Assembly (NCBI GenBank): GCA_021613535.1
Contig: CP075497.1
Coordinates: forward strand, 6,820,001 to 6,884,000
DNA from: Adineta vaga
Taxonomy: Eukaryota; Animalia; Rotifera
Length of the DNA: 64,000 bases
Direction: 5' to 3'
In this document: positions 20,601 to 22,026 of the stretch, piece after piece
Position numbering within the stretch: the first letter of the stretch is position 1
Layout: each line of letters starts with the position of its first letter
Translations under genes and position numbers: made by a program
The notes under the pieces: generated by a model
Database searches by the model: none
Told to the model about the DNA's origin: nothing
The model's input: only the letters and a program-made list of their open reading frames with translations

Positions 20601-22026
20601 ACATGAAACAATTCATTCGTTATTTGATTTCATCAAACATTGGCGAGGTAAGTGATTGAATGAAGAGAGGCGAAGATAAAAATCATGGACCTTTGTATGT
20701 GCTTTGTGATTGAATAGGTTGTGTGTATCTTTTTGACTGCTGCGCTTGGATTACCAGAATCGTTGATTCCCGTTCAATTGTTATGGGTAAATTTGGTAAC
20801 AGATGGTTTACCAGCTACAGCACTTGGTTTCAATCCACCTGATTTGGATATCATGGAACGACCACCACGTAATCCAAAAGAATCGTTGATTACACCCTGG
20901 TTATTCTTTCGTTATATGGCTATCGGATGTTAGTATCTATATTAACTTTATTTATTTTCTTATGATATCGAATTCATTATTTTAGGTTATGTTGGTTTCG
21001 CGGTAGTATGGAGTGCCTCATGGTGGTCAATGAGTGCTACAAATGGTCCTCATCTCTCTTATTGGCATCTAGTATGTATACTTTTCATAGAATATTTCTT
21101 CTCCAAAAAACAAATGAGAGAATATTAGTTAAAAGAATATGTTTATGAAATATCTTAAGGTCAAATTTAATGATATTGTAACGAGAAAAATCATTGGTAA
21201 GATAAATTAAAAGTGAGGCAAATAAGCATGTAATTATTTTATGTATGCGCGTGCATTGATATATTCTTTTTTAATTATGAAAAGTTTGAGATAAAAATAA
21301 AAGGAAACACTCACGTATGTTTATCAGAAAAGCATGTGTGTTACTGTTTATATCAATGATTAAATAATACAGAAACATCTTTATTTAGAAAAATCATTTT
21401 AAATGTCGTGCAGGTGGCAAAGAATGGGAAGGTATAAGTTGTTCCGTATTCGATGATCCACATCCAATGACAATGGCATTATCAGTACTTGTCACCATTG
21501 AAATGTTAAATGCACTCAATAGGTATGTCATCGAGAATCATATGTCTATAAAATATATGTCCTATTTATTTGTTTGTTTGTTCTAGTTTATCAGAAAATC
21601 AATCTCTCTTGAAAATGCCACCATGGACAAACCCATATCTCTTATATGCTATTGCTTTATCCATGTCATTACATATGATGATCCTTTATATTCCAATGTT
21701 CAATGTAAATTTACTTGTATAATTATTTTCTATCGCACTATCATTTATATTTTAGACTGTGTTTCAAATATGCCCATTATCATGCGAAGAATGGTTTGCT
21801 GTTATAAAAATTTCTTTACCAGTCGTATTATTAGACGAATTACTCAAATATATTGCAAGACAATATATTGATCGTAGGATTAGATTGATCAAAACTAAAT
21901 AATCTTTTTAAAACTAATTCCCTTCTTCTAGGTAGTGTTAAATCAAAACAAGCAAAGTCGGATTTTCAAAATAATGTAACTCCAATCGATAAAATATCAA
22001 AGCGACAAACACCTCATATCGAATAG
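17669..22026 (+). CDS. SERCA: Sarco/endoplasmic reticulum Ca2+-ATPase, tandem copy 1
   Basis: TGES, IPEGLP, CSDKTGT (phospho-Asp), [33 protein letters not shown] and VTIEMLN are all intact across spliced exons. Single M7 exon 20986-21071. Terminal exon 21932-22026 gives a hydrophilic tail (RSVKSKQ...QTPHIE*). Confidence 0.95.

Follow-up and report, generated by a model that had tools for sequence, protein, structure and literature searches.

Why does one gene of a mostly near-identical tandem pair carry a single version of an exon that its neighbor carries in two? The question is raised by an AT-rich stretch of 64,000 nucleotides in the genome of the bdelloid rotifer Adineta vaga (contig C6, positions 6820001-6884000; here the window), which contains two SERCA genes in head-to-tail arrangement on the plus strand. 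The downstream gene (copy 2) has two homologous forms, A and B, of an exon encoding part of transmembrane helix M7, while the upstream gene (copy 1) has A only. A previous reading of the letters without database searches (the sequence-only reading) had proposed that an alternatively spliced isoform was partitioned into its own gene and promoter, i.e., that the pair was subfunctionalized. In the account that we find probable, copy 1 is the A-only upstream member of an old pair, and the two isoforms of a single ancestral gene were progressively divided between two genes while gene conversion continued to homogenize the pump core.

Copy 1 is an expressed SERCA gene with a single A-type exon

Copy 1 is an expressed, fully spliced, and separately transcribed working SERCA (P2A-type Ca2+-ATPase) paralog. 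Assembled RNA contigs from three runs of three studies (X1, X17, and X19) span positions 17648 to 22161 with fourteen GT..AG joints. Entry into the exon encoding helices M5 and M6 is given by the joint 20647>20718, and GT..AG joints of the 3' part in these runs are 20928>20986, 21071>21389, 21522>21587, 21704>21756, and 21873>21932. The gene is identified as a SERCA gene because its N-domain exon matches SERCA2 and SERCA1 chains (E 2.5e-57), its M5-M6 exon matches the Pfam domain Cation_ATPase_C (9e-21), and its A exon aligns to residues 843 to 869 of SERCA1a. The phosphorylation site (DKTGT) and the M4 motif PEGL are read in its open reading frame at 18805-19299, and Ca2+-site motifs are present as NLVTDGLPA in the M5-M6 exon (the N, T, and D residues of M6) and as a conserved Glu in the M8 exon. 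All searches were performed exon by exon, the genome searched comprised 100.8 Mb in 6 pieces, and trees were built with separate exon alignments as partitions.

The single 86-nt A-type exon described by the sequence-only reading was recovered with the same translation, and RNA from the three studies provides joints on both of its sides. A small correction was needed at its upstream border. The M5-M6 exon ends at 20928, its final T forming a Cys codon with the first two letters (GT) of the A exon, and the short intron therefore covers 20929 to 20985.

The A exons of copies 1 and 2 are 70% identical in DNA and have 23 of 28 residues in common, with a nonsynonymous divergence (dN) of 0.11 and a saturated synonymous divergence (dS). 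The ratio dN/dS is approximately 0.06 within the copy-1 type, 0.09 within the copy-2 type, and 0.10 between the two groups. The A peptide had been suspected to be under selection on account of its conservation despite many synonymous differences, and these ratios (about 0.06 to 0.10) confirm it and indicate strong purifying selection.

A and B exons are divided to different degrees at related loci

In copy 2, the A exon (86 nt) is followed by a B form split into two exons, B1 and B2 (37 + 49 = 86 nt). A and B1+B2 are homologous, of equal length and phase, and stand in tandem in copy 2 and in the metagenome loci L021, L022, L028, and L030. The downstream gene carries the canonical M7 version as B, with A as a putative mutually exclusive alternative in genes of the window type. 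The intron between A and B1 of copy 2 (29920-29962) is 43 nt long, compared with 50 to 70 nt for ordinary introns, and its first ~25 nt are near invariant across four organisms; it is a candidate for the element enforcing mutual exclusion.

A second tandem SERCA pair was found on contig C3 at 9020-9034 kb (loci L015 and L016), at the ohnologous position, i.e., the counterpart created by the bdelloid genome duplication, and between the same neighbor genes. Its upstream gene (copy 1') has an A exon only, followed by a 226-nt intron, and a hydrophilic tail homologous to that of copy 1, both ending in ..H[IV]E. Its downstream gene (copy 2') lacks a functional A exon and has only B1 and B2, plus a short tail exon. 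The isoform split is complete on C3, with one isoform per gene, and only half done in the window, where an A-only gene stands beside an A+B gene. Several introns were lost from copy 1' (L015:3420-6536), leaving a 314-codon open frame across former exon borders, which shows that introns are being lost in this gene family.

The intron before B1 of copy 2' contains a decayed A exon (L016:5433-5470; C3:9032432-9032469). A pyrimidine tract and the first 23 nt of the exon align to the A exon of copy 2 with a score of 17 (z = 7.6), which was reached by none of 1,000 shuffles and by none of seven control stretches, all of which scored 13 or less. The relic has lost its acceptor AG and its first Tyr codon has become a stop codon, while the codons for VGFS can still be read. 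An A+B gene therefore became a B-only gene beside an A-only gene. As the relic lies on C3, A in copy 2 therefore also predates the genome duplication.

Similar arrangements were found in other organisms. Scanning metagenome contigs with three A peptides yielded 12 loci, which were annotated by local tblastn with the exon peptides of the window; the contigs look bdelloid because the same gene pair is present on them. In L021 and L022, an upstream A-only gene (tail ..AHIE) is followed after ~2.4 kb by a downstream gene with A, B1, B2, and a TM11 exon, i.e., one encoding an eleventh transmembrane helix. In L024, an A-only gene with just 50 nt between its A and M8 exons is followed by a B-only gene. 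The L024 B exons group with those of C3 with 97% support, and L024 is therefore a C3-type locus of another organism, whereas L021 and L022 are of the window type. Four further loci (L019, L020, L023, and L029) are A-only genes, and L028 and L030 are A+B genes. Orthologous A-only exons thus occur on C3 and among the metagenome loci L019 to L029, and the upstream gene is A-only in every tandem pair found (window, C3, and metagenome loci).

The M7 exon lies outside the gene conversion tracts

In a blastn comparison of copies 1 and 2, positions 17724 to 20927 aligned at 92 to 94% identity, introns included, with the alignment ending at 20927, and positions 21383 to 21876 aligned at 86%. No alignment was obtained across the M7 exon and its flanking introns. 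The dS between the copies was 0 in the M5-M6 exon, saturated in A, 0.12 in M8, 0.09 in M9, and 1.67 in M10. The A exon is therefore an old island between recently homogenized stretches. Introns included, the conversion tracts cover 17850-20927 and 21389-21704 in copy 1 and 26650-29716 and 30372-30687 in copy 2.

Four parts escaped conversion: the upstream region together with exon 1, the M7 exon region, M10, and the tail exons; C3, L021, and L024 show the same pattern. The 5' conversion tract ends at the start of the M7 region in every locus examined. Identity of the first coding exons of the two copies is only ~60%, and the blastn match does not begin until within exon 1, which means that the upstream region of copy 1 is its own.

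Different parts of the genes record different histories. In the 5' 3.3 kb, 329 informative sites join neighboring genes, compared with 25 and 14 for the other two groupings, and in the M5-M6 exon tree the genes of A. vaga, L021, and L024 cluster by locus (98% and 81% support), as is characteristic of concerted evolution. In contrast, the M8 to M10 exons group by copy type (70% support for the copy-2 clade), and the tail exons are homologous between loci and not within a pair. Taken together with the shared neighbors, these results mean that the pair goes back to a single old tandem duplication, after which the pump core was converted repeatedly. The pair is older than the bdelloid genome duplication and also older than the separation of several bdelloid-like metagenome lineages.

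Copy-specific tails

As the sequence-only reading had noted, the terminal exon of copy 1 is hydrophilic and lacks TM11. Its maximal 19-residue Kyte-Doolittle mean is -0.94, compared with +2.01 for the TM11 exon of copy 2, and the RNA joins 21873 to 21932. No TM11-like peptide was detected in copy 1 by tblastn at E<=20 or by nucleotide and profile searches, and copy 1 does not have the membrane-spanning hydrophobic C-terminal extension that defines a SERCA2b-like pump. Its tail is homologous to those of C3 copy 1' and of the copy-1-type metagenome genes (L020, L021, L022, L023, and L029), all of which end in ..H[IVL]E. No further homologues of the copy 1 tail or of the TM11 exon were found elsewhere in the genome.

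A link between A and the absence of TM11 had also been suggested. It fits in part only: copy 2 likewise has a conserved short hydrophilic tail exon (31458-31501), and TM11 is found only in genes of the C6 type. The intron before the TM11 exon (30869-30946) has 78 nt, is a multiple of three and free of stops, and its retention would keep the frame open into TM11 (open reading frame 30778-31122).

Search for B remnants in copy 1

The intron that follows the A exon of copy 1 was described as unusually long, and it is: at 317 nt, with the joint 21071>21389 in RNA, it compares with 50 to 119 nt for the remaining introns of the gene. As it lies where B would be expected, it was searched for functional or decayed B exons. 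No B-like coding sequence was detected in copy 1, including 21072-21388, by tblastn at E<=20. Comparison of B1, B2, and the whole B region of both A. vaga copy-2 genes with 21072-21388 gave a best Smith-Waterman p of ~0.05 against shuffles, MAFFT alignments of the same interval were negative, and an nhmmer search with a B-region profile from six genes did not match any of seven copy-1-type introns. Functional B-type exons in copy 1, which would have contradicted the sequence-only reading, were thus not detected by any of the peptide, nucleotide, or profile searches, and neither were remnants of them.

Two candidate signals were set aside. An 11-nt B1-like start lies 39 nt into the C3 copy 1' intron, at the expected distance from A; its p of ~0.005 is uncorrected for 12 tests and the profile search gave it no support, and we did not rely on it. 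Furthermore, some RNA contig ends carry B1 letters after 20927 or B2 letters before 21388, as if B were spliced into copy 1. This was rejected: the M5-M6 exon is identical in both copies up to its last base, and after one differing base near the start of the M8 exon the next 39 nt are identical, so that contigs assembled from short words can cross between the copies. These contig ends are best explained as copy-2 isoform B contigs crossing into copy 1.

Order of exon duplication, gene duplication, and exon loss

The account that we favor has four steps. An ancestral SERCA gene would have carried A and B as alternative exons. The gene would then have been duplicated in tandem, with copy 1 losing B. 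After the whole-genome duplication, the C3-type copy 2 lost A, leaving the relic, so that its downstream gene is now without A, while the window locus is only half partitioned. Conversion keeps the catalytic cores near-identical, while the 5' exon with its upstream region, the M7 region, M10, and the tails stay specific to each copy. That exon duplication came first, followed by gene duplication and then reciprocal loss, we regard as reasonably likely.

The sequence-only reading had named a transfer of A from copy 1 to copy 2 after the duplication as the finding that would reverse its direction. No support for a recent transfer was obtained. The copy-2 A exons of four organisms carry a diagnostic Asp (SMDA, compared with SM[SHY]A in copy 1), three of these exons cluster together at 90% support, and the C3 relic places A in copy 2 before the genome duplication. 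The two A exons have diverged to saturation, and their separation is therefore no younger than any other between the copies. The A-exon tree is otherwise poorly resolved.

Several observations weigh against the favored account. The A-exon tree is based on 86 nt, its A-to-B branch is saturated, and the two A exons of the L021 pair fall weakly together in it (62% support). A is unsplit and B is split by an intron, and a simple tandem exon duplication would need an additional intron loss or gain. No B relic is detectable in copy 1 or its orthologs, and the 317-nt intron may derive from the long intron between B2 and M8 of copy 2 instead of from a decayed B region. Finally, the assembled RNA contigs attest to the existence of transcripts and not to expression levels or rare isoforms. 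The subfunctionalization reading is supported in part: an A-only gene with its own 5' exon, upstream region, and tail lies beside a B-carrying gene, and its partner is B-only on C3 and in L024, but copy 1 holds no detectable trace of a former B.

A rival account, which we consider unlikely, has the reverse order. Under it, a single canonical gene was duplicated in tandem, the M7 exon of copy 1 lost its intron and diverged to A (neofunctionalization), and before the genome duplication A entered copy 2 ahead of B by ectopic conversion or unequal exchange, so that copy 1 never had B. The lack of a B relic in all seven copy-1-type introns and the unsplit state of A would then be expected; conversion between the two genes is demonstrably frequent, and intron loss is seen in copy-1-type genes, as in C3 copy 1' with its long open frame. 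However, tandem exon duplication is the usual origin of mutually exclusive homologous exons. The two A exons are saturated, to at least the depth of the unconverted M10, and the transfer would have to be nearly as old as the gene duplication itself, in addition to preceding the genome duplication as the C3 relic demands.

It is very improbable that copy 1 is a decaying or redundant duplicate whose A-only state reflects neutral degeneration. Its frame is intact, spliced, and covered by RNA contigs of three studies, its A exon has a dN/dS of ~0.06, and an A-only gene with a conserved tail of its own has been retained by the two ohnologous loci and by several other organisms. Least credible, and rejected here, are independent recent duplications on C6 and C3 after the genome duplication with A-only genes arising twice in parallel: neighbors are indeed 89 to 92% identical, compared with ~79% for ohnologs, and are joined by the 5' 3.3 kb, but the copy-specific tails are homologous between loci and not within a pair, the 3' exons (M8 to M10) group by copy type, neighboring A exons are saturated at synonymous sites, the same flanking genes occur in the same order on C3 and in several metagenome loci, and within-pair identity falls sharply at the same exon border in every locus, which is a signature of gene conversion.

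Possible role of the A-type helix and conserved blocks in the following intron

Aligned to SERCA1a, A keeps Y843, V844, and G845 and changes A846 to F, G850 to W, and F856 to S. As positions 846 and 850 are one helical turn apart, the two changes are expected to line up as aromatic residues along a single face of M7 in its luminal half, and the exchange of small for bulky residues (A846F and G850W) probably reshapes part of the M7 surface. G841 and G845 form the tight contact between M5 and M7 in SERCA1a. Accessory helices of other P2-type pumps (the Na,K-ATPase beta subunit and TM11 of SERCA2b) may make use of this M7 surface.

The 317-nt intron of copy 1 contains conserved blocks resembling splice sites, together with GCATG motifs, the second of which lies at 21332-21336. 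A 12-mer and a 9-mer are common to four sequences, while a common 10-mer of any kind arose in none of 500 shuffles. Four to five metagenome loci retain the blocks in the orthologous intron although synonymous sites between these sequences are near saturation, and the 9-mer resembling a 5' splice site lies 19 to 37 nt downstream of the 12-mer resembling a 3' splice site. Between them, a pseudo-exon at 21160-21196 has 37 nt, the length of B1, and would shift the frame if included; no inclusion was seen in RNA contigs. The 12-mer also contains a look-alike of the AGGTCA half-site. The blocks were considered as a known or structured RNA and rejected as such, with no Rfam match at threshold and a consensus fold of only a 7-pair stem and no covariation.

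A broader hypothesis would join these observations, and we offer it as doubtful. The A-type M7 gene may be a functionally distinct SERCA class across bdelloids, with F846 and W850 remodeling the M7 surface; selection for that difference, beyond sequence heterology, might bar conversion from the M7 exon in every lineage, and the conserved intron blocks might be a regulatory or poison-exon module left from the former switch.

Relation to known systems and significance

Separation of splice isoforms after gene duplication, with mutually exclusive homologous exons going to different paralogs, has been documented, with 11 events in vertebrates (Abascal, Tress and Valencia 2015, PMC4494069). The C3 pair and L024, with one homologous exon per paralog, correspond to this process, and the window pair is an intermediate, with one gene fixed and the other carrying A and B. 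Unlike the vertebrate ohnologs, however, the genes described here are a bdelloid tandem pair that is still homogenized by conversion except near the partitioned exon and the gene ends, and its A+B state before duplication is inferred.

Two further known patterns are relevant. SERCA2a and SERCA2b, as well as invertebrate SERCA, are C-terminal splice variants without or with an eleventh transmembrane helix. The locus resembles them in joining a constant pump core to alternating tails, as copy 2 has TM11 and a short hydrophilic tail and copy 1 a hydrophilic tail only. It differs in that the tail variants are partly divided between two genes and half of M7 also varies. It is likewise known that tandem duplicates can evolve in concert apart from islands left out of conversion, and here too the genes are mostly near-identical with short, functionally distinct segments diverged. 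In this case, however, the escaped island is an alternatively spliced exon region, and the 5' tract stops at its upstream border everywhere examined.

Our literature search on SERCA together with mutually exclusive exons or bdelloids found no variation of SERCA M7 by exon choice, and no paper on bdelloid SERCA genes was found. The kind of process is known; what this analysis adds is the A-only neighbor, its expression and conservation, the partitioned C3 locus with its relic, and the conversion pattern. One genome displays two stages side by side, a fixed gene next to an A+B gene in the window and one isoform per gene with a relic on C3, and the question of how far alternative splicing and gene duplication substitute for each other is thereby made testable. 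The locus also illustrates that short, functionally distinct segments can stay diverged for very long inside genes homogenized by conversion, which is considered important in asexual bdelloids. Furthermore, pump biology gains a naturally occurring protein in which half of helix M7 is constitutively altered, and the canonical form is available for comparison in a pump that is near-identical elsewhere.

Feature coordinates and gene neighborhood

Coordinates of the features discussed are collected in Table 1.

Table 1. Features of the tandem SERCA locus and its flanks (positions within the window)
Feature	Position	Strand	Evidence or remark
Na,K-ATPase beta-chain gene, upstream flank	14700-15427	-	Pfam PF00287
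SERCA copy 1	17669..22161	+	Start codon 17669, stop 22024-22026, 3' untranslated region to at least 22161; open reading frames, exons, RNA contigs
M5-M6 exon, copy 1	20718..20928	+	Identical to copy 2 except last base; end of 5' gene conversion tract
Intron before A exon, 57 nt	20929..20985	+	GT..AG joint in three runs
Single A-type M7 exon, copy 1, 86 nt	20986..21071	+	Luminal half of M7 and start of loop L7/8; SERCA1a residues 842-870
317-nt intron, longest in copy 1	21072..21388	+	Joint 21071>21389 in three runs; no spliced piece within
Conserved intronic blocks	21155..21253	+	3'-splice-site-like 21155-21166; 5'-splice-site-like 21195-21203; GCATG 21226-21230, then 21240-21253; orthologous intron alignments
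Loop L7/8 and M8 exon, copy 1	21389..21522	+	Recently converted with copy 2, dS 0.12
M9 exon, copy 1	21587..21704	+	Recently converted with copy 2, dS 0.09
M10 exon, copy 1	21756..21873	+	Unconverted, dS 1.67 to copy 2
Copy-1-specific hydrophilic terminal exon, without TM11	21932..22026	+	Joint 21873>21932 in three runs; hydropathy
SERCA copy 2	~26486-31122, further tail exon to 31501	+	Exons, homology to copy 1
A exon, copy 2	29834..29919	+	Exon homology
B1 (29963-29999) and B2 (30066-30114), copy 2, canonical-type M7	29963..30114	+	B1/B2 letters in loose RNA contig ends
TM11 tail exon, copy 2	30947..31122	+	Sole such exon found in genome; homologues in L021, L022, L030
Short hydrophilic alternative tail exon, copy 2	31458..31501	+	Conserved in all copy-2-type genes
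EF-hand myosin-light-chain-like gene, downstream flank	32034-32760	+	Window neighborhood

The light-chain gene also follows the pair on C3 and in L021, L022, L024, and L030, and the beta-chain gene lies upstream in L024 as well.

Within the M9 exon of copy 1, position 21632 is C in the assembly and T in all four RNA runs; T is the copy 2 state, and adjacent positions are in the copy 1 state. The T is probably an allele or a small conversion patch. The metagenome locus L025 (3770 nt) combines exons of both L024 genes: its N-domain exon is that of the downstream, B-only one, and its exons from M5-M6 and A onward are those of the upstream one. Either identical sequence gave rise to an assembly chimera, or L025 represents a haplotype in which the conversion tract is longer.

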